From: Macrostomum lignano | Lineage: Eukaryota | Assembly (NCBI GenBank): GCA_002269645.1 | Contig: NIVC01000064.1 | Span: 124,001 to 188,000, forward strand | Length of the DNA: 64,000 bases | Direction of reading: 5' to 3' | Part shown: in pieces, positions 8,794 through 54,829 of the stretch | How positions within the stretch are numbered: position 1 is the stretch's first letter | Layout of the letters: every line of letters begins with the position of its first letter | The notes under the pieces: model-generated | Databases searched by the model: none | What the model saw: the letters and a program-made list of their open reading frames with translations, nothing else | Told to the model about the DNA's origin: nothing | Program-made: the position numbers and the translations under genes

Positions 8794-9750
8794 ATGCCAA
8801 ATAAATGCGCCGTTTTTGGCTGCAAGTCCAGCCGCGAGTCGGCAACGGCACGGTCAGCGAGGATTTCATTCCACAAGTTTCCGAATCGAGACGACCTGCT
8901 GGAAAAATGGTTAAGGAGCATTTCCCGAGAAGCAACTTTCAAGCCATCGAAGCACACTCGAATTTGCTCTCTTTACTGCACGGAATCAGATTTTATTGCT
9001 GAGAATCAGGACAGCAATGCATATCGGAAAAAGAAACAACACGTAGAAGGTGCCAATCTTGTAAAAAGAATATTAAGAGAAGATGCAGTTCCCACCCAAT
9101 ATAGCACGACCAGCATGACATCATATTTCACAAAAACTCCACTAGCTTCGCGATCAGGAAACGCATCTTGTCGCAACGGCGTCACGAGATCGATGTCGCA
9201 CAAGTGAAACAACAAGTGAGAGATTATTTTGCCAGTGAAAGAATTCAAGGTCGCTAAGTTTTCGAAAGAGAATTGAAGCCGTCCGGATTTATTGCGCATC
9301 AACCAGCAGACACTCTCAGCATTATGCTTATAGCTAATGGTCTACCTCCCATGGTCAAGAGTTGCATAGCCGTGAATTGTAAGTTGGAAGTCCTAGTTTT
9401 TTATGGCAGCCGGGCAGTATCGCCAAAACAGTACAGCCACATCATTCCAGTGTCCTCAACTCTGAGTTCAGCCACGCAGCTTGTAAATTTAATGGCCTTT
9501 GTGAAGTCTGCAACTGAATCCAATGCATTCCACGTTGACCACAAAGAGGCTACATGCTCTAGATAGTCTCAAACAGTTGCTCCAGCAGGACAATTGTCCG
9601 TCAGACAGCAGTGCGCCGTCTTGCCTGGCTTTTATTACTGAGCAGCTCAAGCTGGTTGATGTGGACAAGCATGCTCGACGCTATTCGCCTGAGTTGATCG
9701 TTTTCTCTTATATTCTGTTGTCTGTGAGTCCGGCTGCTTTGCTTGCTTGA
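8794..9750 (+). pseudogene. Decayed THAP-domain / P-element-like transposase fragment
   Basis: MPNKCAVFGC..FHKFP..W..P...ICSLYC is a THAP with the H ligand lost. Frameshifted downstream pieces end in LAFITEQLKL..ARRYSPELIVFSYIL..SPAA, which resembles the post-THAP region of P-type transposases. No catalytic core. Confidence 0.7.
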
Positions 9751-10259
9751 CATACTCCTGTGCCTACTTGTGTTACATCTAGAAATTGATATAATTTCAA
9801 CGTCTTCTTGTCGCGTTTCATTTCTGTGCTTTTGTTATTGTTTCGGAAATATACTTTGAAATATGATCCTTCTTTTTGAATATTCTGTGTGTTTACTCCG
9901 TACGCTTGCGATCTCTAATCTTGGCCTCATTTTTTACAACTGATATTTCAGTTGTCATTCCAGTCGCTAGATTTAGAATTGCTTGCACAAGCGCATAGGA
10001 GAGCCAAGGCTCATATTGAGTTTCGAACTCACAGTAGTTTGTGTCTCACGACTTCAACTCGATTCAATAAAGAAGCGGAGAACACAACATCTTTAAGACA
10101 CGGCTTGTCCTTAGTTTTCGATCTACGTCTTTAAGACGCGTGACTTCCAGAGTCGTATCCAGCTTCAAATGTACTATATATTTAATTACTCGTACATTAT
10201 TAAACAACTCATGCCACTTTCTGTCCGACTCCGTTGCACCCATACCTTTCAGACAACCG

Positions 10260-13200
10260 ATGGCAGACAATACCGAAGACCTGACCTACCATGTGCACAG
10301 ACCAGTCCTAGACTATGGCACTTTTGCTACAAAATATCGAGAGACATTCCGTCGAAAGCGATCCCTGCTAGAGGTTGCTCGCGATGAAGCTAAACAGCAG
10401 TGCGGAGGCTGCACCGGTCGGCACTGGGTCAGCCGTCTGCTCAACTTGGTGCCGTTAGTGAATCTGCTTCGACTTAATCAGTATAGCAGAACCGACCTGC
10501 TCTCCGACGTTGTGGCGGGGTTCACTACCTGCGTGTTTCACATACCCCAAGGCCTGGCTTACGGACTGCTAGTCAGCCTCAAACCAATCAACGGTCTGTA
10601 CACGTCTCTGTTTCCCGTATTCATATTCGGCATATTCGGCCGATCGAGGCACCTGTCTATTGGTACATTCTCTCTGATGGCTCTATTATTGTCCGACATG
10701 ATCGAAGCGAACTACGAAGCTTATATACGTCGGATGCCGGGTAACTTTAGTGCACCGATGAACTACACTAGGGCTGAATATGCCAAGTTGCAAACTGCCG
10801 TGGTTGGCACTTTTGCCGCCTCTGCTATGATTCTGACGGTCGGGATTCTGCGCCTGGGATTCTTTATGCGCTACATGTCGGATGCCATGCTGAAGGGATT
10901 CACCGCCGCGGCGGCTGTTCAGGTTGTTGTCAGCCAACTGCCTCTGCTGCTCGGGATTCAGCCCGAGAGAAGCAACAGTCACTTCAGGATTGTAGCTGTG
11001 AGTTGCTATAGAAGTCCCAATTCCAATTATATAGATGTCCTAATACTAAAAATGAGTTGTCTGTGGGTAGGTAGGTAGGTATGCGATAGATTTCAGAAAA
11101 AATGGCTCAACCGATTTTCTTCAAACTTGCACCATTCGATCAGAAATTTTCCTGGGACGGTACATGCATCTTGGCTAAGAAATTGCTCAATATTAAAGGG
11201 ATTAAATATTCGAAAAACATGCTTTTTTGCAAAGGTCAAGCAGCTCTTTCGACTTGAAATGCATTGTAATAATGCTAGAGAAAAAACTGACTGACTGAAT
11301 TTCAATTCTGATAAAGATTGCATCACAAAAAGATGAAAACAGTGTCGAAAAAATGCACACAAGGCTTGATTGTAATTGCGTAACCATATTGCTAACTTAA
11401 ATTGAGACTGATACTGGCTGACTGAGAAATTGATTATGTCATAACTTTTTACTCCAATTGACTTGCTGTAAGAATTGAATTATAAGGACCACAATTCATG
11501 TTCTCCAATTGAAAAGAGATAGCCAAGATGCGAACAGACTAGAATGCTAATGTAGCGACCTGGGTTCGAATCTTAGTAGTGTAAAAAGAAAAAGATTTTT
11601 TTTATCAAAACACCTTAAAAAACACAAAACTGCTAAACATAATAGAAGCGCAATGTCAAACATAGAAGAGCCACCATGTCAAACATAAAAGAGCCACCAT
11701 GCCAAACATAAAAGAAGCACTATGTCAAACATATATGTGACTCCACGTCAAACATTTAAGAGCCACCATGTCAAAACATTTAAGAGCCAACATGTCAAAA
11801 CATTTAAGAGCCACCATGTCAAACATTTAAGAGCCACCATGTCAAACATATATGTGACTTTATGTCAAATTTTAAAGAGCCACCATTTCGAACATTAAAT
11901 AGCCACTTTGTCAAACATTAGAGAGCCGCCGTGTCAAACATAAAAGAGCCACCATGTCAGACATTAAAAAGCCACCGTATTAAACATAAAAGAGTTACCA
12001 TGTAGAACAAAAAACAGCCACCATGTCAAACATGAAAGAGTCACCATGTAGAATATTAAAGAGCCACCATGAAGTACATTAAAGAGCCACCATGTCAAAC
12101 ATTTAAGAGCCACCATGTCAAACATATATGTGACTTTATGTCAAACTTTAAAGAGCCACCATTTCGAACATTAAATAGCCACTTTGTCAAACATTAGAGA
12201 GCCGCCGTGTCAAACATAAAAGAGCCACCAGGTTAACCATTAAAGAGCCACCATGTCAAACAATAAAGAGCCACCATGTCAAACATAAAAGAGCCACCAT
12301 TTCGAACATTAAAGAGCCACCATTTCAAACAGTAAAGAGCCACCATGTCAAACATTAAAAAGCCACTTTGTCTAACATTAAAAGAGCCACCATGTCAAAC
12401 ATTTAAGAGCCACCATTTCAAACAGTAAAGAGCCATCATGTCAAACATTAAAGAGCCACTTTGTTTAACATAAAAGAGCCACCATGTCAAACATTAAAGA
12501 GCCACCATGTCAAACATAAAAGAGGCACCATGTCAAACCTAAAAGAGCCACCATGTCAAACATAAAAAAGACACCATTTCGAACATTAAAGAGCCACCAT
12601 TTCAAACAGTAAAGAGCCACCATGTCAAACATAAAAGAGCCACCATGTCAAACATTAAAAAGCCACTTTGTCTAACATTAAAGAGCCACCATGTCAAACA
12701 TTTAAGAGCCACCATGTCAAACATAAAAGAGCCATCATGTCAAACATTAAAGAGCCACTTTGTTTAACATTAAAGAGCCACCATGTCAAACATTTAAGAG
12801 GCACCATTTCGAACATTAAAGAGCCACCATTTCGAACATAAAAGAGCCACTTTGTTTAACATTAAAAAGCCACCATGTCAAACATTAAAGAGCCACCATG
12901 TCAAACATAAAAGAGGCACCATGTCAAACCTAAAAGAGCCACCATGTCAAACATAAAAGAGCCACCATTTCGAACATTAAAGAGCCACCATTTCAAACAG
13001 TAAAGAGCCACCATGTCAAACATAAAAGAGCCACCATGTCAAACATTAAAAAGCCACTTTGTTTAACATTAAAGAGCCACCATGTCAAACATAAAAGAGC
13101 CACCATTTCGAACATTAAAGAGCCACCATTTCGAACATAAAAGAGCCACCATGTCAAACATTTAAGAGCCACCATGTCAAACATAAAAGAGCCATCATGT

Positions 13201-24911: not shown

Positions 24912-25160
24912 GGGGGTTGTAGCCTAGTGGTCGGAGAGTCGGACTCACGATCTGAAGGTTAGGGGTTCGATTCCCGATCCCACCCGGAGCAATTTGTGTC
25001 CTTGAGCAAGACACTTAAGTCTGCATTGCTTCAGTTCACGCAGCTGTAAAATGGGTGCCAGCATTAGCTGGGGTAATTGAGGGTGTGTGCGGCGACCCCC
25101 CCCCCAGTATTCGGACAGCCGCATCTCAACTCAAGTAGGGATCGCTAAGAATCTGGACAG
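24912..25160 (+). mobile_element. tRNA-derived SINE with CORE(MIR)-like central domain
   Basis: A box TAGCCTAGTGG and B box GGTTCGATTCC, then GTCCTTGAGCAAGACACTTAA...CAGCTGTAAAATGGG resembling the CORE-SINE domain. A second orphan B box lies near 24853-24863. Confidence 0.75.
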
Positions 25161-28142
25161 TCACACTAGCGATTCCTGCTGATTCGCCAGCCGGAGCTCC
25201 AGCGGCTGGGGCAGCCGGGTTCGCGGCTTCGGCTGCAGCAGCTGCTGTTGCTGCTGCCTCGGACTGCTCAAAGCTGAGTTGGTTTCGCTTCGAGAAGCAG
25301 CAGCGCCTGCAGCCGTTGCCGCGGGTCCTCGCATTGGCGCGTGCCGGCTGGAGAAGTTCAACTGCCGCTGCTGCTGTCGACTTTGCCGGCCGCCAACCGT
25401 CGCCGAATCGAAGCTGTCCCGGGTGTGCAACCGGGACAACCGGTCGAATTCCTGACGCCGGTGTCGGGCGGTTTCGTCTCCGTCTGGCTGGTGCCGATGG
25501 TGCTGATGTTGGTGCTGCTGGTGCTGCTGGTGCTGGTGCTGCTGGTGCTGGTGATTCGATGACTGGTGCTTTGATGAAGATTCGAGGCCCAGCAGCTCCA
25601 AACGAGTCTCTGAACTGGAACGCTTGCGGAATTTGGACTGACGCTGGAGCTGCTGGAGCTGCTGCTGCTGCTGCTGATGCTGCGCAGCAGCCGACGTAGC
25701 CGCCGCTGCCGTCGAAGCCAACGAATTCGCTGGCACCGCTCGCACCGGTCTCGCTGCCGGCGAAGACGATGCCGTTGTTGTTGATGCAGAAGATGCCGAT
25801 GCGGACGCTGGAACTGACGAAGACGCGACTGTCGACACCAGCGGATGACGTGACTTGGACTCGGCTAGCGGATCGAATCCCGCCGGCAGCGGCTGCCGGC
25901 CCGACGTCCCCACCGACGCTGGCCGCCTGTTCATTCTGGCTGGCACCGGCGGCCGCTCCCGAGCAGGCGGCTTCGTCACCTCCTGGTAGGGCAGCTGCGG
26001 AGGCGGAATTGGCTTTCTTTGAGGCTTCTGCGGCGGCTGCTGCTGCGGCGCCCTGGACCGCTGACTTCGAACCTGCCTTTTGATAGCGATATCGTACGGC
26101 GGCGGCTGCTGACGCTCAGGAATGTCAATGGGAGCTGCGGCTGCCGATCGACGATTGTCGTCAAGCTGCTGATCGCTGAGCTGCAGCCCGGAGTCCTTGG
26201 ACAGGGAGGACAGCGACAGCGGCTCGGCGGCGTCCATCGCGGTTGGCCTGACTCCGTCGAGACTCTCCGTGGAGGACAGGTGCTCGTCAGTCTGGCAGAT
26301 GTGAGTCACGAAATCGTTGAGAGCTCGTTCGTTCTGCCGGGGGTCCGGCCAGATTTCGTCGAAATTGGTGATCAACAGCTCGATGAGTTTGTTGATGCGC
26401 TGCGCGTCCTGCTCCATGCTGGCCAGGTTGATGTCCTGCTGGTCCTGCTCCAGCACGGAGAACGAGACCGACCGGCCGATGTTCGCCGGGTTCATCTGGT
26501 TCTGCTCGTGATTGCTGGCCACTCGACGCAGTGCAGTCATCAGCATGTGCAACAGGTGGGCATTCTGCGGATGCATCTGCTGGATGACGCTGCGGATTTC
26601 ATCGGAAGCGGCCTTCGAGCTGAGCACGCCGTCCACTACGTCGCGTCCGATGCAGCTCCACTGGCCGAAGAGGTTCCTCTGCAGCAGGCAGCCGGGCAGG
26701 TTCCTGAGGTAGTGCTTCAACGCGTCGCCAATGCAGTGGTCGCCGAAGCTGTTGAGCTGCGGCAGATTGTCCGGCTTGGACAGATCGTACTGGCTCAGCA
26801 GCTGCAGCACCTGGTTCTTCTCGCTCACCGAGCCCGGCTGCCGGAAAATTCCTTTGGTGGCGTAGCAGCGGTGGTAGATCTGCGCCAGAAGACACGTGAC
26901 CGGACGCGACACCACGCCAGAGGGGAACAGCTCGGCCAGGGGCCGGCCGATTATTGGCGACGGCTCGCCGGACGAAGAGCCTCCACCGCTGATTCCGCCG
27001 CTGCTGCCGCCGCCCGACACTGTCAAAGCTTCCACTGAGGCCTGCCTGACCAGCAGCGACCGTCGGTTGCTGGAAATCCAGTTGCGAATTTTGCTGGGCA
27101 CTTCAGACGCTCGACGGGACTGCTGCTGCTGGTGCTGGTGCTTCTTCTTCTTGCTGGTCGAGCACACCCCGGCAGAGCAGGCGTCCTGCGAATGCAGCGA
27201 CAATCGAACCCGACAAGCTGTCGGCTGCTCAACGTCCAGATCCATCGAGTTCGACTCGTTCGGGCTGGTCGACGACGCCTCGGACATGACGCTGCCGCGC
27301 CGCCTCTCCGACTTGTGCTGCTCGTGGATGTGGTACAGCACGGTGGCGAAGATGGACTCGCAGCCCACCATGCAGTGATTGCCGCTGGAGCCTTCCAGGC
27401 ACAGCTGCGCTCTGAAGCTCGCATCGAGTTTAAACGCTGTTTTGCACTTTCGCGCCACATCGTTAGCCGTCTCGTACGGCTTGACCGTCAGCGTCTGGAC
27501 GGCGGCACCGGATGATGAGGCGGCGTCCGCTCCACCGTACGATGGCGACGGCGGATCGACGTAGACCTGGATGCAGCTGGCCAGGCTGACCTGGCACTGC
27601 TCGCTCGGCTCGGCGTCCTCGCCGTAGAGTCGACGCAGCGTCTCCAGGTTGACCTTCTGGAAGGCCAGCAGGAAGCGCTCCTTCTCGCTGCTGGTGCCGA
27701 AAGTGACAATCATGAGGTCAGTGTGCCAGCCTGCCAGCACCGCCAGGCTCTCGTCCTTGATCCGGTGGCTATCGCTGGGCACGTAGTCTGAGACGTTCCG
27801 TCTGACCCAAACGTAGTAGACAAATATCTTGGCCTTGATCTTGTCCTTCTTCTTTAGCTTGAGCTGGTCGCCTTGGAGCTGCAGCACCCTGTTGGACGGA
27901 TCCTGATCGAAGTGCACCGGCTGACCTTTGGAGGACTTTTTGCGCGAATGAACGTCAACCCGAGCCTCGAACAGGGTCTCGCCGGCGAGGTGTTCGTCCT
28001 CGGACGAGCTGACGCATTCGCCGCTGGAGTCGCGCAGCAATCTGGAGGCGCCGCTGCCGCCGAACGACTTGGAGAATGCAGGCGTCTGCAGGTACTGCAG
28101 CTGCTGCTGATTCCGCCTGACTGTGACACCTGTGTCGTCCAT
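25161..28142 (-). CDS. ARHGAP20: ARHGAP20-like Rho GTPase-activating protein (PH-like, RA-like, RhoGAP, Q/A/P-rich tail), ~993 aa single large coding exon
   Basis: RhoGAP motifs TKGIFRQPGS (arginine finger), DALKHYLRNLPGCLL and NQMNPANIG; an RA-like TLTVKPYETANDV lies upstream. Likely ATG at 28142, possibly extended by a micro-exon ending at 28647. C-terminus is ESLV. Confidence 0.82.
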   Translation of the reverse strand: MDDTGVTVRRNQQQLQYLQTPAFSKSFGGSGASRLLRDSSGECVSSSEDEHLAGETLFEARVDVHSRKKSSKGQPVHFDQDPSNRVLQLQGDQLKLKKKDKIKAKIFVYYVWVRRNVSDYVPSDSHRIKDESLAVLAGWHTDLMIVTFGTSSEKERFLLAFQKVNLETLRRLYGEDAEPSEQCQVSLASCIQVYVDPPSPSYGGADAASSSGAAVQTLTVKPYETANDVARKCKTAFKLDASFRAQLCLEGSSGNHCMVGCESIFATVLYHIHEQHKSERRRGSVMSEASSTSPNESNSMDLDVEQPTACRVRLSLHSQDACSAGVCSTSKKKKHQHQQQQSRRASEVPSKIRNWISSNRRSLLVRQASVEALTVSGGGSSGGISGGGSSSGEPSPIIGRPLAELFPSGVVSRPVTCLLAQIYHRCYATKGIFRQPGSVSEKNQVLQLLSQYDLSKPDNLPQLNSFGDHCIGDALKHYLRNLPGCLLQRNLFGQWSCIGRDVVDGVLSSKAASDEIRSVIQQMHPQNAHLLHMLMTALRRVASNHEQNQMNPANIGRSVSFSVLEQDQQDINLASMEQDAQRINKLIELLITNFDEIWPDPRQNERALNDFVTHICQTDEHLSSTESLDGVRPTAMDAAEPLSLSSLSKDSGLQLSDQQLDDNRRSAAAAPIDIPERQQPPPYDIAIKRQVRSQRSRAPQQQPPQKPQRKPIPPPQLPYQEVTKPPARERPPVPARMNRRPASVGTSGRQPLPAGFDPLAESKSRHPLVSTVASSSVPASASASSASTTTASSSPAARPVRAVPANSLASTAAAATSAAAQHQQQQQQLQQLQRQSKFRKRSSSETRLELLGLESSSKHQSSNHQHQQHQHQQHQQHQHQHHRHQPDGDETARHRRQEFDRLSRLHTRDSFDSATVGGRQSRQQQRQLNFSSRHAPMRGPAATAAGAAASRSETNSALSSPRQQQQQLLQPKPRTRLPQPLELRLANQQESLV

Positions 28143-42400: not shown

Positions 42401-43737
42401 TGGGTCATGGTACAAGATTCAGTTAATTGCGTCAAATTCTAAAAAACCGTATGTTTTCATAACTGCAGTTAGAAACAATCCACTGAAATTTTTTTTGGAA
42501 TCTAAAAAATGAAACTGCTAAATTTAAGTCAAAAACGGGTTGTTAAAGTCAAGGAAAGCTCACGGGGATAACTAAGGCCAAGAGCCTAGCTATAGCGCCA
42601 CAAGTGAGATTTTAGCGCAGCAGGTGAGATTTTAGCGCCACAAGTGAGATTTTAGCGCCACAAGCAATATTTAAGTGCAACAAGTGAGATTATATCGCCA
42701 CAGGTCAGATTTTAGCGCCACAAGTGAGATTATAGCGCCGCAGGTGAAATTTTTGCGCCACAGGTGAAGTTTTAGCGCCACAGGTGAGATTTTAGCGCCA
42801 CAAGGGAGATTTTAGCGCCACAGGTAAGGTTTTAGCGCCACAAGTGAGATTTTAGCGCCACAAGTGAGATTTTAGCGCCACAAGAGATTTTAGCGCCACA
42901 GGTGAAATCTTCGCGCCACAAGTGAGTTTTTAGTACAGCAGGTAAGATTTTAGCACCACAAGTGAGATTTTAGCGCCACAGGTAAGATTTTAGCGCCACA
43001 CGTGAGATTTTAGCGCCACACGTGAGATTTTAGCGCCACACGTGAGATTTTAGTGCCAAAGATGAGATTTTAAAAACAAAAAACCTAAAGGAGCATGGAA
43101 ATGGAAAAATATTTTACGCCAAATTCACTCAAATATTTACCAGGAAAAATCACTGAAAAGAACGGACATCCCTCTACGAATGAGTGATTACTGACAAAAT
43201 AAATTTCCAAGGTAGATCGAGATAAGAATTTACGGAAACTTGCTCAGGCTTAAGCTTATAGTTTTAATTAGAAATTAAACTAAGCTCGTAACACACGAAG
43301 GTCAACAAGCGACAGGTGCTGGCCAACCTCACAATGACACATTAGCGCACACCTAGGGTAGCAAATGCAAGCATGGAAAGAGAAGCAAAATGCCTTACCT
43401 GAGGTATATGAAACACGCAGGTGGTAAAGCCGGCCACTAAATCGGACACAATGTCCATTTTGCTGTATTGTCCAGTTCTAATCTGGCCAACCAGAGGCAG
43501 CAGGTTTAGCGCTCGCAGACGCCAGGCGTCCCTGCTACAGCTGCAGGCTTTGGCCATAGACGATCGAACGGTGCTGCTGAACGGCGCGTGGCCCAGCAGG
43601 GCTTCTCCGTAGGCGTTGTTGAAGTCGGCATAATTGTACACTGGCCGGCGAACATGGAATTCCAGCGCTGGCTGCGACGGCGGCGGCACTGTCTTATTGG
43701 CGTCGACATTGTCGGTTTCGGCAGGTTGAGCTGACAT
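36408..43737 (-). CDS. SLC26 anion transporter paralog C with STAS, ~722 aa; exons 43737-43399, 40471-40022, 39224-38742, 38206-37589, 36686-36408
   Basis: GT-AG phase-0 junctions; three introns sit at the same positions as in paralog B. STAS motifs VRFDAPLNFANA and VLDCSSWVSVDMVG. The last acceptor could alternatively be at 36719. Confidence 0.9.
36820..37540. repeat. 20-bp minisatellite AGGAAGGAATCTGAGGATCT (paralog C intron 4)
   Basis: About 35 copies. Confidence 0.95.
38270..38728. repeat. 28-32-bp minisatellite (paralog C intron 3), same family as 18280-18590
   Basis: CCAGCCTCCCAGATCCCCAGTTGCTGGG units. Confidence 0.93.
39290..39905. repeat. 20-bp minisatellite CCCTCAGTGTCTTTATCCTA (left arm of an inverted pair)
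   Basis: About 30 copies in paralog C intron 2. Confidence 0.95.
40757..41600. repeat. 20-bp minisatellite TAGGATAAAGACACTGAGGG (right arm, reverse complement of 39290-39905)
   Basis: About 41 copies in paralog C intron 1. Confidence 0.95.
42590..43075. repeat. 20-bp minisatellite GAGATTTTAGCGCCACAAGT
   Basis: About 24 copies in paralog C intron 1. Confidence 0.93.
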
Positions 43738-43872
43738 TTGTCTTATCTCTTGAACTTTAATTGATGACTATAGCTTATGCAGTCGGTCTCGCCGGCCGGT
43801 TGCGTCCTGCTCTCTTACTGCTCTGCAAACGAAGGAAAAATACACACAACAGGAGAGAGTTTTGCTGTCTTT

Positions 43873-45344: not shown

Positions 45345-48300
45345 TCAATCGATGAGGTCAGTCTCGTGTCTTTCCACCATGGCCCAGTAGTGGCCGCGCT
45401 TCTGCAGCAGATCGCTGCGTTTGCCTTGCTGTAAAATTAATTTGTTGGAGAATCAAGATTAGTTAGATGCGTTATTACAATTACTTCATTTTTGCAGAAA
45501 CTTTAGGGGGATGTACCTGAGGATTGGGGGTGGAATAGGGAGAATCTACCAGAGGATTGAGGGTTGGGGACGGATCTACCTGAGGATTGACGGGTGGAGA
45601 CGGATCTACCTGAGGATTGAGGGTTGGGGATGGATCTACCTGAGGATTGAGGGGTGGGGACGGATCTACCTGAGGATTGAGGGGTGGGGACGGATCTACC
45701 TGAGGATTGAGGGGTGGGGACGGATCTACCTGAGGATTGAGGGGTGGGGACGGATCTACCTGAGGATTGAGGGGTGGGGACGGATATACCTGAGGATTGG
45801 GGGGGGGTGGGGACGGATCTACCTGAGGATTGAGGGTTGGGGACGGATCTACCTGAGGATTGAGGGGTGGGGACGGATATACCTGAGGATTGAGGGGTGG
45901 GGACGGATCTACCTGAGGATTGGGGGGGGTGGGTACGGATCTACCTGAGGATTGAGGGTTGGGGACGGATCTACCTGAGGATTGGAGGGGTGGGGACGGA
46001 TCTACCTGAGGATTGAGGGTTGGGGACGGATCTACCTGAGGATTGAGGGGTGGGGACGGATCTACCTGAGGATTGAGGGGTAGGGACGGTATACCTGAGG
46101 GTTGGGGGGTGGGGCGGGTATACCTGAGGGTTGGGGGTGGGCGGATATACCTGAGGATTAGAGGGGTGGGCGGATATACCTGAGGATTAGAGGGGTGGGG
46201 CCGGTATACCTGAGGGTTGGGGTGGGGCGGATCTACCTGAGGATTGAGGGGTGGGGACGGATATATCTGAGGATGGGGGGTGGGGATATACCTGAGAAAA
46301 TAGGAGTGAAAGGTAACTCTTTGCAAAAAATTATTACTAGAATTCACACAATACTCGAAAAATAGCCAAAGCACTCGCCTCCAAAACGCGACCGTTGCCC
46401 ATGACAACCACATAGTCGGCGGATTCGATGGTGGACAATCGGTGAGCAATCACTATCACTGTGCGGCCCTGCATAGCCTGTTGCAGAGCGGCCTGGACAA
46501 GCCGTTCGCTCTCCGAGTCCAGGGCGCTGGTGGCCTCGTCCAGAATCTTGAAGGGATGGAGTGAGAGGAGGTGAGAGATGCTGAAAGCGAAATTTGATGC
46601 AGCTGTGTATGAAGATCGTTTGCATGAAAATAACTCTCTGAAGATTCAGAGAGGTGGATACACCTGAGGTTCAGAGAGGTGGATACACCTGAGGTTTAGA
46701 GAGGTGGATACACCTGAGGTTCAGAGAGGTGGATACACCTGAGGTTTAGAGAGGTGGATCCACCTGAGAATCGATGGGGAGGGGGCGGATCCACCTGAGA
46801 ATCGAAGGGGTAGGGGGCGGATCCACCTGAGAATCAATGGGGGAGGGGGCGGATCCACCTGATAATCGATGGGGGAGGGGGCGGATCCACCGGAGAGTTG
46901 ATGGGGGAGGGGGCGGATCCACCTGAGAATCAATGGGGGAGGGAGCGGATCTACCTGAGAATCAATGGGGGAGGGAGCGGATCCACCTGAGAATCGATGG
47001 GGTAGGGGGCGGATCCACCGGAGAATCGATGGGGGAGGGGGCGGATCCACCTAATAATCGATGGGGAGGGGGCGGATCCACCTAATAATCGATGGGGAGG
47101 GGGCGGATCCACCTGAGAATCGATGGGGGAGGGGGCGGATCCACCTGAGAATCGATGGGGGAGGGGGCGGATCAACCTGAGAATCGATGGGGGAGGGGGC
47201 GGATCAACCTGAGAATCGATGGGGGAGGGGGCGGATCAACCTGAGAATCGATGGGGGAGGGGGCGGATCCACCTGAGAATCGATGGGGGAGGGGGCGGAT
47301 CCACCTGAGAATCGAAGGGGTAGGGGCGGATCCACCCGAGAGAGGTACGCACCAGCAATTTGGGATCTTTGAGCAGAGCCCTGGCAATGGCGATCCGCTG
47401 TTTCTGACCGCCGCTGACCGCCAGCCCCCGCTCGCCAACGTGCGTGTCGTAGCCGCGCGGAAACGCCTTGATAAACTTGTGCGCCTGGGCAAGGCGGGCC
47501 GCCGCTTCAACCTCGGCGTCGGTGGCCTCTGGCCGGCCGTAGCGAATGTTCTCGCGAATGGTGGCGCAGAACAGGGCGGGCTCCTGTGGGATCAGGCCAA
47601 CCAGGCGGTCGCGCACCCAGCCAGGATCGTAGGAGCGGAGATCGCGGCCGGCTAGAAGCACCCGACCGTCCGTTGGGTCGTAAAACCTGACACAGTGGAG
47701 AGGGAGGAAAATATTGAGAATTGACTTGAGGGATAAGAAGAGCGAATACTTTAACACCCTAAGTTTTTTACACTTCTTTTAGTTAGAAAATTTAATCGAT
47801 CGATACATATCGGTATACTCGCAGTGGGGAGGGATTTTGTATATTTTGCGCGACTATTAGGCAAATTTAAGCAATAAAAACATATGCTTGGTTAATTAAC
47901 GTTATACATATCGGGTTATAGAAATACAAAACAAATACAATTAATAGTCTTGAGTGTTTTGACACATATAGGTACATTAGTTTAGGTAGGTAGCGCTTTC
48001 ATTGAAATCAAGTCAACAAAATGTTGCTGTTCATAAATAATTAAATTAAACTTTAATACTAATTTTCTATTGTTATGCTGAGTAATGAAATGCATTTATT
48101 AAAAAAATTGTCCCAAGGATACTTGAATCAAATAGGTTTTCGATACATATCGGCACTTTAACATATAAAATCGTACTTGAAAAAAAATTGGAGTTTTTAT
48201 TACTTTTGATACATATCGACGCTTTGAAAAAAGGTTTCGGATATTTTTAAACCGATACTTACTACTATTTCTACTCTACATGTAAGTAGTGCATAGCGCT

Positions 48301-50326
48301 AATCTGCACTCACCTGGTCAGCAGCTGGGTCACCGTACTCTTGCCCGCCCCAGACCGGCCGCACACGGCCACAACGCAGCCGCTGGGCACCGTCAGGCTG
48401 ACGCCGTCCAGCACTACGGCGTCCGGCCGGCCGGGATACGCAAACCGGACATTCTCCAACCGGACAAGATCCTGTCCGGCCGATACAGGGGCCGCCAGTT
48501 CGGTCAGCAGGCCCGGACGACCACGATCGATTTCTATGCAGGGCCGACTGTCCAGCAGGCGGAATACTCGACCGCCGGCTGTGGCGCCTTTGATTGCGTG
48601 GCCAAACAGGGGCGACAGGTTGGCGGCCGAGCGCATTGCGGTCTGCACGCCCACTAGGTAGGCCGTGAGCTCGCCGGCTGTGAGCTCGCCCCGGCCGATG
48701 CAGACGCCGCCGCCGCACAGGACTGTGAGTACTACTCCGTTCACGGCTAGATTTGATAGGGCCTGGTAGGATTTAATAAAATAAACAGCGTTTACTAAGC
48801 GAGATTTGTATAGTTTCGATACATATCGGATTTACTTAAGTAATTGTAGATATTTCCGATACAAATCGGCCTTCTTAATTAGCTGTCGATCAGAAGTTTT
48901 GCATACTTTCGATACATATCGGCATTTTCAATTATTAGATATCGACATACACTTATGTGGCTGGTTTTGCATACTTTCGATACATATCGGCATTTTCAAT
49001 TAGCTAGCGACATATACTTATGTGGCTGGTTTTGCATACTTTCGATACATATCGGTATGTTTTTAAATCCATAAAAACTTCACCTGGAACAGTCCAATGC
49101 CCAGTGCCAATCGTCTGGCCAGAGCAGCAGCCTCTTCCACCTGTCCCTCGTAGAGTCGCAACTCTTCGGCCTCCATGCCGAACGCTTTGACGCTGCGCAT
49201 CTGTGTCAGGGCTTCGTGCGCCACCGCGTTGGCGGCAGCTTGTTGCGCGGCGGCTCGCTTGCTCAGAGCTCGAAGCATAGAGCCGAGGCCCAAGCCGACG
49301 GCAACAACTAGGGGAATGTACAGCAGAAAAAATGCCGACAGTCTGGGCGACATGGCCACCAAATAGCCGAGGCTGCCAACTGTTTGGGTGGCGTTGCGGA
49401 GGCCCTGCGACACGGCCGACTTGAATGCGCTTTTGAAGTCCTGCGATTGAATTGGAATAAACGCAGGTATAGTTGTCTTGGACCGGGAGATGCACATTGA
49501 GGAGTAATGGGGAATCCTAAGGATCGTATGTACATTGAGGAGTAATGGGGAATCCTAAGAATCGTTATTACATTGAGGGGTAATGGGGAATCCTAAGAAT
49601 CGTATGTACATTGAGGAGTAATGGGGAATCCTAAGAATCGTATGTACATTGAGGAGTAATGGGGAATCCTAAGAATCGTATGTACATTGAGGAGTAATGG
49701 GGAATCCTAAGAATCGTATGTACATTGAGGGGTAATGGGGAATCCTAAGTATTGTATGTACATTGAGGAGTAATGGGGAATCCTAAGAATCGTATGTACA
49801 TTGAGGGGTAATGGGGAATCCTAAGAATCGTATGTACATTGAGGAGTAATGGGGAATCCTAAGTATTGTATGTACATTGAGGGGTAGTGGGGAATCCAAA
49901 GAATCGTGTGTAGATTAAGGGACAGTGGGGAATCCAAAGAATCGTGTGTACATTGAGGGACAGTGGGGAATCCTAAGAATCGTATGTACATTGAGGGACA
50001 GTGGGGAATCCTAAGAATCGTGTGTACATTGAGGAGTAGTGGGAATTCAAAGAATTGTGTGTACATTGAAGGAGAGAGTACATTATTAGATCGCGCAGCC
50101 ACTCACTTGAACATCGCCAGACAATCTGCTGAGCAGTTCGGCGGAGCGGTGCCGATCAAAGAAGGCCACGTCCTGAGTCAGCAGGGTGGCCATCAGCCGG
50201 CGTCGGAGTCGGGCGGCCAAATTTTCGCCAACGCAGCCGAGCAGGGAGATGTAGGCGAATGTGACGCCGCTCTGTTCGGGGGCAAAGGGGAGTTATCTGC
50301 TCTAAGCATGAGCTAACGATGGTATG

Positions 50327-50380
<54 letters not shown>

Positions 50381-51462
50381 AAGACAGACAGACCGACAGG
50401 CAGAAAGACAGACAGACAGACAGAAAGACAGGCAGACAGGCAGACAGACAGAGGAATAGACAGACAGGCAGACAGACAGACACAGACAGACAAAGACAAA
50501 GAAGACGAGCTTGCCAGTTATATGTTATTTGCCTCAGAGCCGCCATCTCACCTGAGCAGCATACACTCCCAGCAGCCTCAGAGCCGCCATCTCACCTGAG
50601 CAGCATACACTCCCAGCAGCCTCAGAGCCGCCATCTCACCTGAGCAGTATACACTCCCAGCAGCCTCAGAGCCGCCATCTCACCTGAGCAGCATACACTC
50701 CCAGCAGCCTCAGAGCCGCCATCTCACCTGAGCAGTATACACTCCCAGCAGCCTCAGAGCCGCCATCTCACCTGAGCAGCATACACTCCCAGCAGCCTCA
50801 GAGCCGCCATCTCACCTGAGCAGCATACACTCCCAGCAGCCTCAGAGCCGCCATCTCACCTGAGCAGCATACACTCCCAGCAGCCTCAGAGCCGGGCCCA
50901 TCACAGTCTTCAACTGGTCCCAATCTGCGCCCTGCAGGCGCATCACCGAGTCCACAACCTGGCTGATCCCGACAGGAATTTGAACGTTCAGCAGAGCGGC
51001 GGCAACGGAAGCGACCACCGCAGCCAGAAGCAAATGAAGATCCGGAAGCAGCAGACTGCCCAGCAGGCGCCAACTGAACTTACCGACGTCGTCGTCGACA
51101 GAACGGGACACCGCAGACGCATCTTCATCGGTGCGCGCCAGTTCTGCAGGCGGAGCAGTTTCTGCTCGAACAACTCCGCCGCCTAATGAGAACAACGATG
51201 CCGATGCTGACAGCCAATCAGAGCTTGCCACGTAGCAGCCCAACCCGACGCCACCGCCAACAACAGCAGCGGCCGAGCCTAATGCCAAACGAACTCCTCG
51301 TCGGCCTATTAAAGCTACTAAAGGTCTACGACGCTTAGCAACGGTTGCTAATAGCAAAGAGGCATAGGAAGAGATTGATCTGCTGCGGATTGCAGACGAC
51401 AAGTTGAAAATTTGACCAGCCGGTGGCCGCCTGGTGGGCAGCTGGCGAATTCGAACCACCAG
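45345..51462 (-). CDS. ABCB8: Mitochondrial ABC half-transporter ABCB8-like, ~720 aa; exons 51462-50860, 50271-50107, 49440-49084, 48762-48314, 47686-47353, 46546-46379, 45428-45345
   Basis: AALLNVQIP and [10 protein letters not shown] match ABCB8. Walker [10 protein letters not shown], signature [16 protein letters not shown], Walker [19 protein letters not shown]. Exon phases are consistent. The last intron is GC-AG. The first exon has no usable ATG. Confidence 0.9.
45505..46300. repeat. 30-bp G-rich minisatellite GGACGGATCTACCTGAGGATTGAGGGGTGG (ABCB8 intron 6)
   Basis: About 26 copies. Confidence 0.95.
46640..47340. repeat. 31-32-bp G-rich minisatellite GGCGGATCCACCTGAGAATCGATGGGGGAGGG (ABCB8 intron 5)
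   Basis: Shares the GGATCYACCTGAG core with the intron 6 array. Confidence 0.95.
49490..50065. repeat. 38-bp minisatellite ATGTACATTGAGGAGTAATGGGGAATCCTAAGAATCGT (ABCB8 intron 2)
   Basis: About 15 copies. Confidence 0.95.
50324..50500. repeat. (GACA)n microsatellite
   Basis: Direct inspection. Confidence 0.95.
50531..50887 (-). repeat. 44-bp tandem repeat of the ABCB8 exon 1 end plus 5' splice site, 8 copies
   Basis: Unit TGAGGCTGCTGGGAGTGTATGCTGCTCAG|GTGAGATGGCGGCTC. Confidence 0.95.
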
Positions 51463-51674
51463 CTGCGAGAGAGCCAGGAGCGTATTAATGACAGCAGTTA
51501 CAGCAACAATAAAGTCCTCCTTAGGAAGCCTTAAATCCCGTGTCTAAGCTAGAATCTTAATAAAAAGTACATCATGTCCCCAAAATCCTGGCTCAAGATC
51601 CCGAGCGGACACTGACATATCTCGGTACCGAAAATTTGCCAGAAGCCTACAACGAGTCTTTTTAACAAGCTCGA

Positions 51675-52385
51675 AGCTTCACAAGCTCTCACAAGCTCGA
51701 CACGCTCTCAAAAGCTCTCACAAGCTCGACACGCTCTCACAAGCTCTCAAAAGCTCTCACAAGCTCTCAAAAGCTCTCACAAGCTCGACACGCTCTCACA
51801 AGCTCTCACAAGCTCTCACAAGCTCGACACGCTCTCACAAGCTCTCACAAGCTCGACACGCTCTCAAAAGCTCTCACAAGCTCGACACGCTCTCAAAAGC
51901 TCTCACAAGCTCGACACGCTCTCACAAGCTCTCAAAAGCTCTCACAAGCTCTCAAAAGCTCTCACAAGCTCGACACGCTCTCACAAGCTCTCACAAGCTC
52001 GACAAGCTCTCACAAGCTCGACAAGCTCTCACAAGCTCGACAAGCTCTCAAAAGCTCTCACAAGCTCTCAAAAGCTCTCACAAGCTCTCACAAGCTCGAC
52101 AAGCTCTCACAAGCTCGACAAGCTCTCACAAGCTCGACAAGCTCTCACAAGCTCGACAAGCTCTCACAAGCTTTCACAAGCTCGACAAGCTCTCAAAAGC
52201 TCTCACAAGCTCGACAAGCTCTCACAAGCTCTCACAAGCTCGACAAGCTCTCACACGCTCTCACAAGCTCTCACAAGCTCGACAAGCTCTCAAAAGCTCT
52301 CACAAGCTCGACAAGCTCTCACAAGCTCTCACAAGCTCGGAGCTTCACAAGCTCTCACAAGCTCCCACAAGCTCGAAACTTCACA
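51675..52385. repeat. Mosaic 9/10-bp minisatellite (AAGCTCTCAC / AAGCTCGAC variants)
   Basis: Direct inspection. Confidence 0.95.
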
Positions 52386-52859
52386 AACTCCCAAGTTTCA
52401 CAAACTGGAAGCTTCACATGGTCGAGCTTATAAGCTTATATTATCAAAGCAACAAGCAGGATTTAAGTTTCCAGGTTGTGAAATTGGTCTCCGATGAAAC
52501 TTAGGCGTCCTTCTACTTGGCGTATCAACTAATATGGATGATTTCTCGACTTAACGGGAATCAGAACGGCCAAGAAAGGGTAATAAATTTCTTAGATATG
52601 GTTCTGTTACTTAATCTACACTGTTAGGTGGTAAAGGAAAATTGAAATTAAGAACTTAAGAACAAGAAGATTAACAAGGGATAAGTTTATTTATTCTAAT
52701 TTATTAACCTGGCAATAAATTATACGCTCGTAATAACATCAAATGCTTTAACAGTGCATCAAAATAGCAGAAAATTGAGATTATTTTTATACCAACAAAG
52801 AATTAGTTAACGTTATAAACACACAAATCTACAATAACTTGTAGACATAGACACAATGA

Positions 52860-52920
52860 ATGAGTGAATGACACTAGTTTACTAGTTTCAAACACTAGTA
52901 AACTAGTGTCATTCACTCAT
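52860..52920. other. Perfect 27-bp inverted repeat with 7-nt loop
   Basis: ATGAGTGAATGACACTAGTTTACTAGT-ttcaaac-ACTAGTAAACTAGTGTCATTCACTCAT. Confidence 0.9.
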
Positions 52921-53296
52921 GTTTGAAAAGTCACTTACGCTACATATCGGTTATTTGCTACAACTGGAATAGTTGAGAATTTGTAACCAGCTTAAAGTAT
53001 GAATAGTGCTTTTTAAGCATCGTCAGGATTTTAAAATAACCGTGTAAAGTTATTTACGCTACATATCGGTAATGAAAATAGTAGGCAAGATAGTAGTAGA
53101 GGGTAGACTAGAGTTTAAAAAGCTTTCTTAAGAGGTGATACGCGTAAATTGCTTTAATAAGCCGAAATGATCTCTTAGTCTCTTTAATAGTTAACTCGGT
53201 ACAAAGCTATTTTCGATACATATCGGCAAATCGGCAATCAAGTTAGCATAATCCCTTTAGTGCTTTTCTTTCCCAAGTAGACTATTTTGTTAGAGT

Positions 53297-54592
53297 CTAC
53301 TTGCTGCCGGCGCCGCCAGACACGATGGCGCCCAGACGGCCAAGAATAGCGCCGCCCAGCTCGTTAAGGGAGGCCGTCATCGACTGAGCATCAACTCTGG
53401 ACGAAACGGCGGCGCTAGCGGAGGTGGCGGCAGACTCAACAGCAGCGGTCAGCTGTTGACGCCTCCGACGGCGTTGATAGTCCTGCGCTAGGCGCTGCGC
53501 TCCAGCGTAGAGAACGGCGCCAAACAGGAAGGCCGTTATCAGGGCGGCGCCTTCCTGCATGGCATTTGCAGAGATGCAGATTTAATAAGTAAACTTCAAA
53601 CAAAATGTTTTCTATACTACTAGTTACAAAATTTAGTAGAGTGAAACGGTTTTAAAAAGCCTTAAAAAGCACAAAAAGCACGGATATAAAAAGGGGGTTT
53701 GTGCTTATTAGAAACATATTGCTGCTTTCAATCATTATCATCACTTTTCAAGGCAGCCTTCTTAATGTACATGTAGCCTTCAGGCTTCACCTGTAGCAAC
53801 ATATACTTCTCCAATTGTGAGACTTTGTGGGTCAAGATGAACCATGATGCGAGGATGCGAGGATCACTGGGTCATGTTGTACAGTGCAGGTCAATCTTCG
53901 GTAGGTTATTGTAAGCGTTAATATATAGCTAGTCTGCAAGATTCAATTCAGACTAATGAGAAAAGTAGACAAATAAAGATTTGAATTGTAAAATCTCTCT
54001 CATAGCCCCCGAAAAATGTCACCATAAAAGAAACGTTTGTCTGTGCACACTAAAAGTGGTGGGAGAGCACAGGATTAGAGAGCCAATCCCGAACCTGTAC
54101 TTTAGCGCGAGGTTCGACCTCTACTTTTAGTGTGTCAACACCCACCTTAGAGGCCAGAGCGACCGCAGCTCGAACGGACAAGCTAGAAATAATCTGCACT
54201 GTTCTCAACGCCGCAGAGGTCACCGACTGAGCAGCCCGACGCAGCCGATGCTCAGGCTCCAGCAGCAGCATCAAAGCCAGCTGCACGCACGAGGCGGCCG
54301 CCAGAGCGCCGCCAAGGATTTTGAAAATCTTCAACGAATACTGAATCCAGCCGTCAATAGACTTGTCCTTTGTAAAGCTACTAGTAGGAACTTGTTTAAC
54401 TTTTTTGACACTTTCTGCGAGACAAACACTACTAATACCACTTCTAGTAGTAAGACTAGCACGTACTATGCTACCCTGTGCATGCGCGAAAACAACTGCT
54501 GCCCCCGCAGTAGCGCCAGATAATAAAATCAACCGACGACAAGATGTTGACAGGGTCAGGCTGGTAGCCCGCTGGGCAAGGATGCGCCAAGC
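53297..54592 (-). CDS. Uncharacterised membrane protein with presequence-like N-terminus, ~235-252 aa; exons 54592-54095 (or 54146) and 53554-53297
   Basis: GC-richer open frames bounded by TTTTCAG and CATGCAG acceptors, phase 0, with several hydrophobic segments. No early ATG and no recognised family. Confidence 0.6.
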
Positions 54593-54829
54593 CTGAAAAT
54601 GTTATTAAGATAAGACTTGAAAACTAAAGAGATTTATACATGTACAATACACAGCTAAATACCTTTTTCTGAAAAATTACACTTTTGAAATCCGAATCGT
54701 GGGAGTGGCGTCCTATTCCCGAGAAGGGAAATTTAATGGGGGAATCCTGGACGACGGGGATTTCTGAATGAGTATTCGTGTGAGTGAATTCTGCTAATTG
54801 GATACCCCTCTTAGTGACCACTGCTGATA

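Follow-up and report, generated by a model that had tools for sequence, protein, structure and literature searches.

Two neighbouring genes of Macrostomum lignano probably take their start codon from the spliced leader

In the flatworm Macrostomum lignano, we have found two neighbouring genes on the minus strand, one for the transporter ABCB8 and the other, upstream of it, for an orphan protein, that open directly after a 3' splice acceptor without a start codon. The best explanation, and in our judgement a probable one, is that the terminal AUG of the spliced leader (SL) is the start codon of both. At each acceptor the exon opens in phase 0 of the main open reading frame and no stop occurs from the junction into this frame, and no genome-encoded in-frame AUG gives a conserved or complete N-terminus of either protein. 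The mechanism itself has been described for flatworms since Cheng et al. 2006. That is, what is new here is two further genes and no new mechanism.

The locus and the spliced leader

The window, by which we mean the whole 64-kb stretch of DNA analysed, belongs to M. lignano Mlig_3_7 scaffold NIVC01000064.1 (100% identity). The scaffold coordinate is the window position plus 124000, which places the first exon bases of the two genes at NIVC01000064.1:175462 and 178592 on the minus strand. M. lignano has a single SL of 35 nt, CGGTCTCTTACTGCGAAGACTCAATTTATTGCATG, and its 3' end is ATG (PMC8629364), as the earlier note on this DNA had stated for flatworm spliced leaders in general. About 30–39% of M. 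lignano genes are trans-spliced, with conserved genes over-represented among them (PMC5730564, PMC8629364), and the published trans-splice motif is [T/C]TNCAG (PMC8629364). An SL RNA gene is absent from the window, where an Rfam scan has given one tRNA as the sole match.

The novelty of SL-AUG use was overrated in the earlier note. Since 2006 it has been textbook matter in flatworms, and those who work on Macrostomum already describe the SL ATG as the translation start codon or the likely start codon (PMC10468722). In the literature searched, we have found no experimental proof of SL-AUG initiation in Macrostomum. The searched portions of the text of PMC5730564 and PMC8629364 hold no analysis of the SL ATG as initiator and mention neither gene.

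The 5' ends of the two genes

The central claim of the earlier note, that both genes begin without a start codon, agrees with what we observe (Table 1). The first base of ABCB8 exon 1, 51462, comes directly after CTCTCTCGCAG in phase 0 on the minus strand. The junction reads ...GCTCCTGGCTCTCTCGCAG then CTG GTG GTT CGA ATT CGC, with the frame open from 51462, and the acceptor TCGCAG has one mismatch to the published motif. No ATG is present from the upstream TAG (51546-51544) to exon 1. Ahead of the in-frame ATG at codon 174 there are three out-of-frame ATGs (51365, 51128 and 51122), and transmembrane (TM) helix 1 spans residues of about 133–168.

In the upstream gene, the first exon base is 54592, after ACATTTTCAG, also in phase 0 on the minus strand. 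Here the junction reads ...CTTAATAACATTTTCAG then GCT TGG CGC ATC, and the exon is open from its first base. One out-of-frame ATG (54483) lies ahead of the in-frame one. A second in-frame CAG acceptor occurs 21 nt into exon 1 (GCCCAG then CGG), and because of it the exact orphan junction is uncertain.

Table 1 Features of the two genes and the DNA between them, in window positions.
Feature	Position	Strand	Details
ABCB8 3' splice acceptor (putative SL trans-splice site)	51463..51482	-	Pyrimidine-rich tract + CAG, GCTCCTGGCTCTCTCGCAG
ABCB8 exon 1	50860..51462	-	603 nt, phase 0; encodes N-terminal extension and TM helix 1
Nearest in-frame stop 5' of ABCB8 acceptor	51544..51546	-	TAG, 28 codons upstream
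First in-frame genomic ATG of ABCB8	50941..50943	-	Codon 174 of the exon, beyond TM helix 1
ABCB8 whole coding range	45345..51462	-	6+ exons; stop TGA 45347-45345
Orphan 3' splice acceptor	54593..54612	-	TCTTATCTTAATAACATTTTCAG; TTTCAG, perfect match to published [T/C]TNCAG
In-frame stops 5' of orphan exon 1	54602..54607	-	TAA TAA, 4-5 codons upstream
Orphan exon 1	54146..54592	-	447 nt; AWRILAQRATS...ALASK; donor AAG/GTGGGT
Orphan exon 2	53297..53554	-	EGAALITAF...GAGSK; stop TAG 53299-53297
First in-frame genomic ATG of orphan	54269..54271	-	Codon 108, inside main hydrophobic segment
Tandem repeat between orphan and ABCB8	51674..52374	.	701 bp; 10/19/29-nt units

The ABCB8 gene and its N-terminus

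The ABCB8 product has one ABC_membrane domain (Pfam 5.8e-47) and one ABC_tran domain (Pfam 1.3e-30). Its best half-transporter match in the PDB is human ABCB8 (7EHL/5OCH; 524 bits, 4.7e-156), with ABCB10 scoring lower (383 bits, 2.5e-113). From this similarity, the product is predicted to be a mitochondrial ABC half-transporter whose closest characterised relative is human ABCB8. In addition, the exon 1 product matches residues 2-202 of P0061 exactly and shows a single P->S difference, at exon codon 105, to P0001. A Logan contig of a 46%-identical ABCB8 relative carries an ATG of its own without any SL and is uninformative for the SL question.

The alignment to human ABCB8 covers residues 122-693. 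As it begins at residue 122, coding must start 5' of every genomic ATG. With a Met supplied by the SL, the N-terminal extension would have 128 aa ahead of the conserved KFxW motif, and it is about 102–126 aa in three complete ABCB8 orthologues; the predicted extension thus agrees with the orthologue lengths. The acid-free, Arg-rich character ascribed to this N-terminus is confirmed: the first 60 residues contain 12 R and 1 K, no D or E, and the first acidic residue is number 83. The net charge of these 60 residues is +13 and an amphiphilic segment reaches muH 0.52, a composition that would suit a presequence.

Overall, the ABCB8 N-terminus is a candidate mitochondrial presequence by orthology to human ABCB8. 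The earlier note expected mitochondrial targeting of both proteins. This expectation is well founded for ABCB8; for the orphan, a presequence might be suggested from amino-acid composition.

The orphan gene

The spliced orphan product equals UniProt A0A1I8HLL4 (P0068) without its first two residues. Its N-terminus is acid-free as previously described, with 6 R, 15 S/T and no D or E in the first 60 residues and the first acidic residue at 61. The orphan appears to be a small lineage-specific gene: among 1.84 billion representative proteins we have found no homologue outside M. lignano, and an exhaustive HMMER search and a search with the SL peptide joined to the orphan have given nothing beyond M. 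lignano models except a single spurious match of low complexity. We reject the further possibility that orphan exon 1 is spliced in cis to ABCB8 as its 5' exon: the phases would permit it, 0 at either junction, but this arrangement has no annotation support and would still be without an ATG.

Such a gene might be non-coding or decaying, or its internal ATG at codon 108 might be used to give a 127-aa product, which would leave ABCB8 as the sole genuine case of SL-AUG use. The lack of outside homologues is in line with this, as are the lack of a Pfam domain, the low confidence of the AlphaFold model (all-helical, pLDDT 53), the fact that the gene is unannotated in the window copy, and the 3 non-synonymous and 3 synonymous differences in exon 2 between the window copy and a paralogous copy. 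On the other hand, a 234-codon open reading frame runs across a canonical intron, exon 1 is identical in the two copies (no substitution, no indel), and between the copies the 705 nt of exon show no indel, against 6 for the 591-nt intron. Since the gene is also protein-coding in two independent annotations, and an out-of-frame ATG stands ahead of the internal one, we regard an untranslated or internally initiated orphan as quite improbable.

The same comparison for ABCB8 exon 1 gives 3 substitutions and 0 indels, and codon 1 changes from CTG to TTG (Leu=Leu). Judged from the paralogous copy, coding constraint reaches up to the acceptor.

Annotated 5' ends

We have compared the annotated 5' ends with the two acceptors. 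GenBank PAA92079.1 (ABCB8, window copy) starts with QLVV at 51465, in the acceptor's own CAG (i.e., at -3 nt), and PAA87959.1 (ABCB8, paralogous copy) starts with LVV at the first base after the AG, while PAA87960.1 (orphan, paralogous copy) starts 9 nt after the AG. All three are flagged as 5' partial with complete 3' ends. The two orphan UniProt models, which open with FQAWRIL, have their 5' end 6 nt ahead of the AG and are 5'-incomplete, and the three UniProt ABCB8 models start mid-exon 1. In other words, the 5' ends of the GenBank coding sequences (CDSs) and the orphan UniProt models fall at -6 to +9 nt of the two AG acceptors, which is more than chance, and none of these models has an upstream ATG exon.

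The M. lignano annotation was made by cutting transcripts at mapped SL-read sites and then applying TransDecoder to the genomic sequence (PMC5730564). By this procedure, an SL-AUG-dependent gene would appear as a 5'-partial CDS. The scatter of the ends (-3, 0, +9 and -6 nt) indicates that some models, at least, were not cut at the SL peak. In the protein collections searched, there is no transcript-derived M. lignano product of either gene, Logan included, and Mlig001875, Mlig014609 and Mlig016839 are not mentioned in the full texts and supplements searched.

Alternatively, each gene may have an upstream ATG exon that is unassembled, cis-spliced in phase 0 and hidden behind the intergenic tandem repeats. 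The intergenic regions are indeed rich in repeats, transcript models break in repeats according to the annotation authors (PMC8629364), and the annotated 5' ends vary by a few nt. Searching the upstream intergenic DNA for a phase-0 mini-exon of the form ATG...GT[AG]AG, we have found 0 strong candidates for either gene and 5 weak ATG...GT candidates 5' of ABCB8, one of which is conserved in the paralogous copy. None of them, however, has a GT[AG]AG donor, which is present in 122,399 of the 187,627 M. lignano cis-junction regions (PMC8629364). Moreover, two assemblies and annotation pipelines, across the paralogous copies, end no more than 9 nt from the same AGs with no added exon, and the ABCB8 extension is already of orthologue length. 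A hidden exon is therefore an unlikely source of the start codon.

Proposed initiation at the spliced-leader AUG

Under the SL-AUG explanation, which we infer from the two acceptors and their frames, the pre-mRNAs would be trans-spliced to the 35-nt SL at the acceptors ending at 51463 (ABCB8) and 54593 (orphan). Because both exons begin in phase 0, the terminal AUG of the SL would become codon 1. The predicted products with the SL Met are 720 aa for ABCB8 and 235 aa for the orphan (MAWRILAQRATS...), and the 5' UTR of both mRNAs would be 32 nt, all of it leader. Without trans-splicing, neither gene would have a usable AUG: a scanning ribosome would reach the out-of-frame ATGs first and the in-frame ATG only then, and with a start at the latter, ABCB8 would lose its N-terminal extension together with TM helix 1, and the orphan would lose 107 residues.

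Initiation might instead take place at a near-cognate codon in the genomic exon, such as CUG or GUG at ABCB8 codons 1-2, independently of the SL AUG. The window copy of ABCB8 does open with CTG GTG, both exons have several near-cognates among their first 40 codons, and near-cognate starts in SL-spliced mRNAs have been reported from other phyla (PMC9851317). Yet on an SL-spliced mRNA the ribosome would first come to the AUG near the cap, which is in frame and immediately ahead of these codons. In addition, the first near-cognate of the orphan is ATC at codon 4, and codon 1 of the paralogous ABCB8 copy, TTG, is a weaker initiator. We thus hold non-AUG initiation to be very improbable.

Intergenic regions and the SLC26-A gene

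Between the orphan and ABCB8 lie 1,833 nt, including the 701-nt array, three copies of a 31-nt dispersed repeat and an inverted repeat of 27 nt, and the gap of about 1.6 kb between ABCB8 and SLC26 includes an 825-nt array. Operons in M. lignano are defined as neighbouring genes on one strand that are both trans-spliced and lie less than 1 kb apart after adjustment for repeats (PMC8629364). The orphan and ABCB8 are on the same strand with a raw gap of 1,833 nt, and trans-splicing of either is presumptive.

The earlier note also pointed to an acceptor 36 nt before the ATG of SLC26-A (exon start 43773). It is in frame as stated, but the next two codons read CTA TAG. With TAG as the second codon after the acceptor, SLC26-A fails as a further SL-AUG case. 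Nor do we claim an SL remnant 5' of the BORCS8 ATG, for about 0.7% of window tiles score equal or higher.

Implications

PAA92079.1, PAA87959.1, PAA87960.1 and the UniProt models are recorded as 5'-truncated, and they are probably complete once the SL Met is added. Adding the leader Met may likewise mend many other 'partial' M. lignano genes, and such a correction touches orthology calls, targeting predictions and transgene design in this animal. If SL-AUG initiation is true for the two genes, what was observed in schistosomes would reach to a basal free-living flatworm as well, and there would be a clean case of a presequence-bearing protein that cannot be made without trans-splicing.

A broader reading is conceivable, though we consider it rather doubtful: the SL AUG would be obligatory for co-oriented, possibly co-transcribed genes of mitochondrial proteins, with SL trans-splicing gating both translation and import, and many 'partial' CDSs would be complete with Met1 supplied in trans. 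SL-AUG dependence would then be far commoner in basal free-living flatworms than the >40 schistosome cDNAs indicate.

Comparison with known systems

Human ABCB8 (7EHL, 5OCH), the ATP-binding subunit of mitoK-ATP, has the same half-transporter architecture of ABC_membrane and ABC_tran as M. lignano ABCB8, and both carry a long basic N-terminal extension ahead of TM1. These extensions are not alignable in sequence, and the human gene has its own ATG while the M. lignano gene is without one.

Within M. lignano, Wudarski et al. 2017 (PMC5730564) and Ustyantsev & Berezikov 2021 (PMC8629364) deal with the same organism and the same SL as these genes. The operons described there (PMC8629364) and the ABCB8 region share a same-strand arrangement with gaps padded by repeats. 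The slORFs of slORFfinder (PMC9851317) share the concept that the leader gives the start codon and that genome-only annotation misses or truncates the CDS. They were predicted from SL-read trans-splice sites and are backed in that paper by ribosome footprints, whereas our pair is proposed from the genome sequence and its annotation; many of them are novel or alternative open reading frames, whereas our pair are canonical ones.

The closest parallel is Schistosoma mansoni (Cheng, Cohen, Ndegwa & Davis 2006, J Biol Chem 281:733; as reported in PMC9851317, PMC12582326 and PMC5832876). That the SL AUG can serve as initiator in flatworms is documented (Cheng et al. 2006, cited in PMC9851317 and PMC12582326); according to the account of Cheng et al. 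2006 in PMC9851317, 28% of the trans-spliced S. mansoni mRNAs have the SL AUG in frame and over 40 cDNAs depend on it. As in those mRNAs, the SL of M. lignano ends in AUG, the acceptors are in phase 0, no genomic initiator is present, and Met1 would come from the SL AUG. M. lignano differs in being free-living and of a different order (Macrostomorpha), and in that the SL junction and initiation are deduced here. It also differs from the S. mansoni cases in that two neighbouring genes on the same strand show the SL-AUG pattern.

Two genes opening at a splice acceptor

When the reverse complement is read, both junctions are as the earlier note had described: GCTCCTGGCTCTCTCGCAG/CTG GTG GTT CGA for ABCB8, a mitochondrial ABC half-transporter gene, and TAATAACATTTTCAG/GCT TGG CGC ATC for its upstream neighbour, here called the orphan gene (slashes mark splice junctions). 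Translation bears out that both exons are open from their first base (phase 0), with in-frame stops upstream. The nearest one 5' of ABCB8 is TAG at 51546-51544, 28 codons upstream, with no ATG between it and exon 1, and TAA TAA (54607-54602) lies 4-5 codons upstream of the orphan. The earliest in-frame ATG is exon codon 174 in ABCB8 (50943-50941, minus) and codon 108 in the orphan (54271-54269, minus), preceded by three and one out-of-frame ATGs, respectively.

The spliced leader (SL) of M. lignano, a single 35-nt sequence CGGTCTCTTACTGCGAAGACTCAATTTATTGCATG carried by 30-39% of genes, does end in ATG, as had been presumed (PMC8629364, PMC5730564). This end is common to all reported flatworm SLs (PMC12582326), and the M. 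cliftonense and M. hystrix genome paper expressly treats the SL ATG as a translation start codon, for which reason its authors kept it on their reads (PMC10468722). [T/C]TNCAG is the leading motif among trans-splice acceptors of M. lignano (PMC8629364); the orphan acceptor TTTCAG fits it perfectly, and the ABCB8 acceptor TCGCAG, with a pyrimidine-rich tract ahead of it, has one mismatch. At the sequence level, both genes have every feature of the SL-AUG-initiated class. Overall, it is quite likely that the SL AUG would serve as the initiator of both mRNAs.

Annotated 5' ends

For the Mlig_3_7 annotation, SL-containing reads were leader-trimmed and mapped, transcripts were cut at the peaks (TBONE), and TransDecoder was then applied to the genome-derived transcript (PMC5730564). 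A gene with a leader-only AUG would leave this pipeline as a 5'-partial CDS beginning at the acceptor. The GenBank entries for both genes are all flagged partial, yet their 3' ends extend to the stop codon, so the absent part is the start. A search with the full-length ABCB8 protein gave a GenBank entry of 100% identity, 'hypothetical protein BOX15_Mlig014609g1, partial [Macrostomum lignano]', whose cluster includes a second entry, BOX15_Mlig001875g1, likewise 'partial'. The latter sits on NIVC01000064.1 (GCA_002269645.1, Mlig_3_7), which agrees with window 61465-35345 at 100% identity over 26,121 nt, placing the window at 124001-188000 of this contig. The former sits on NIVC01000209.1, a paralogous or duplicated copy of the locus 92-99% identical to the window, as is expected since the DV1 genome is duplicated (PMC8629364). 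ABCB8 codon 1 is TTG in the paralogous copy and CTG in the window, Leu in both; the orphan has no annotation in the window copy. As the annotated starts scatter by a few nucleotides, an SL peak cannot be claimed as the cutting site of every model. Possible sources of this spread are incomplete transcript ends and the mapping of reads end to end (STAR was used in EndToEnd mode, PMC5730564).

Minus-strand genes and annotated starts (window coordinates)
Feature	Position	Strand	Detail
eIF5A	60926-60254	minus	
BORCS8-like ORF, unannotated	57689-56583	minus	
Orphan exon 1	54592-54146	minus	donor AAG/GTGGGT
Orphan exon 2	53554-53297	minus	acceptor CAG/GAA
ABCB8 exon 1	from 51462	minus	
SLC26-A	ATG at 43737	minus	
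RhoGAP ORF	28295-25161	minus	stop codon at 25161
Second SLC26 ORF	7004-5172	minus	
PAA92079.1 (GenBank), ABCB8, window copy	51465	minus	QLVVRIRQ; starts at the acceptor's CAG (-3 nt relative to AG)
PAA87959.1 (GenBank), ABCB8, paralogous copy			LVVRIRQ; starts at the base directly after AG
PAA87960.1 (GenBank), orphan, paralogous copy			ILAQRATS; starts at AG + 9 nt
A0A1I8HW53, A0A1I8HLL4 (UniProt), orphan			FQAWRIL; starts 6 nt ahead of AG

Encoded proteins and alternative starts

The ABCB8 protein, assembled from six ORF blocks, contains the Pfam domains ABC_membrane and ABC_tran, and its best PDB half-transporter is human ABCB8 (7EHL/5OCH, 524 bits over residues 122-693; ABCB10, 383 bits). 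With a leader-supplied Met, 128 aa precede the conserved KFxW motif, against about 102-126 aa in three orthologues with complete N-termini, and a long missing exon is therefore unneeded. This length speaks against the main alternative, in which an unassembled upstream exon supplies the ATG. Since the coding frame is fixed, such a cis-spliced exon must end in phase 0. We have scanned the intergenic DNA at 53296-51466 and 60270-54596 for phase-0 ATG.../GT and found five weak candidates, all 5' of ABCB8, but none in either interval with a consensus GT[AG]AG donor; we regard this alternative as improbable. The other rivals are less likely still. Among them, a near-cognate start at the CTG or GTG of ABCB8 codons 1-2 is possible in principle, but on an SL-spliced mRNA a same-frame AUG would stand immediately ahead of them.

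Residues 1-60 of ABCB8 hold 12 R and one K without any D/E, the earliest acidic residue being 83, and the opening 11-residue segment is amphiphilic. From this composition, together with orthology, the N-terminus can reasonably be read as a mitochondrial presequence. The orphan N-terminus (residues 1-60: 6 R, 15 S/T, D/E absent) may be one as well, solely on composition.

The orphan comprises 234 codons and has no Pfam domain, and 1.84 billion representative proteins include no homologue of it from beyond M. lignano; its single-sequence AlphaFold model is helical and of low confidence only. Compared with the paralogous copy, its exons show six substitutions and no indels in 705 nt, and its intron seven substitutions and six indels in 591 nt (the probability of all six indels landing in the intron, given six in total, is about 0.009). 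Because the indels are confined to the intron, the orphan is probably protein-coding.

At the other end of ABCB8 exon 1 lies a tandem array of 8.3 copies of a 44-nt unit, with 98% matches (50531-50894, plus-strand coordinates of this minus-strand gene). The unit consists of the final 33 nt of the exon and its 5' splice site (GCTCTGAGGCTGCTGGGAGTGTATGCTGCTCAG/GTGAGATGGCG), giving about eight near-identical donors in series. Since 44 nt is not divisible by three and the unit contains TGA, only the first donor gives the annotated protein. The array length appears to differ in the paralogous copy.

Gene neighbourhood and SL-like stretches

A same-strand gene run covers 5172-63993 on the minus strand, in the order eIF5A, BORCS8-like ORF, orphan, ABCB8, SLC26-A, RhoGAP ORF and SLC26 ORF from high to low coordinates; its intergenic and intronic spaces are filled by a wide variety of tandem arrays, whose periods range from 10 to 125 nt. 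If all are trans-spliced, the orphan, ABCB8 and SLC26-A could form an operon by the repeat-adjusted criterion (PMC8629364). The acceptor claimed 36 nt before the SLC26-A ATG is in frame but offers no usable start: ataag/CTA TAG has an immediate stop, so an SL AUG there makes a two-codon uORF only. Another AG, 30 nt upstream of the ATG (tatag/TCA), is in frame and open (43737-43775, minus); if the SL were joined there, SLC26-A would gain MSSIKVQEIRQ.

The BORCS8-like ORF is an intact single exon of 368 aa (BORCS8 domain PF10167, 6e-30), uncalled as a gene in both GenBank copies. Its ATG lies within TTTTTTGCATG, similar to the SL 3' end TTTATTGCATG, which could be the SL remnant of a retrocopy; about 0.7% of window tiles align to the SL equally well or better. 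The top SL-like stretch is TCTCTTTACTGCACGGAATCAGATTTTATTGC at 8967-8998 (plus; SL TCTCTTACTGCGAAGACTCAATTTATTGC), with a local score of 30, against a mean of 12.4 and an sd of 2.7 across the window. TGAG, not ATG/GT, comes directly after it, and an SLC26-like ORF on the plus strand (10140-11078) lies about 1.2 kb downstream. A pseudogene of the SL, the remnant of a retrocopy or chance could each account for the stretch.

A motif of ~30 nt with CGATATGTAGCG or CGATACATATCGG occurs three times in the orphan-ABCB8 spacer (52924-53230), adjoined by a perfect 27-nt inverted repeat (52860-52920), and again in an ABCB8 intron (48896-49055); the motif has the look of a small MITE-like dispersed repeat. 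A weak tRNA-like Rfam match (24913-24982, plus; 31.8 bits, gathering score 29) sits just past the 3' end of the RhoGAP ORF.

Comparison with known SL-AUG initiation

That the 3'-terminal AUG of a flatworm SL can act as initiator, as the earlier note stated, is already established for Schistosoma mansoni according to PMC9851317. There, 28% of trans-spliced mRNAs are reported to have the SL AUG in frame, and more than 40 cDNAs need it (Cheng et al. 2006); the idea was later generalised as 'slORFs'. ABCB8 and the orphan, which share the sequence-level features of that class, are probably further cases of this known mechanism, and their chief value is for annotation.
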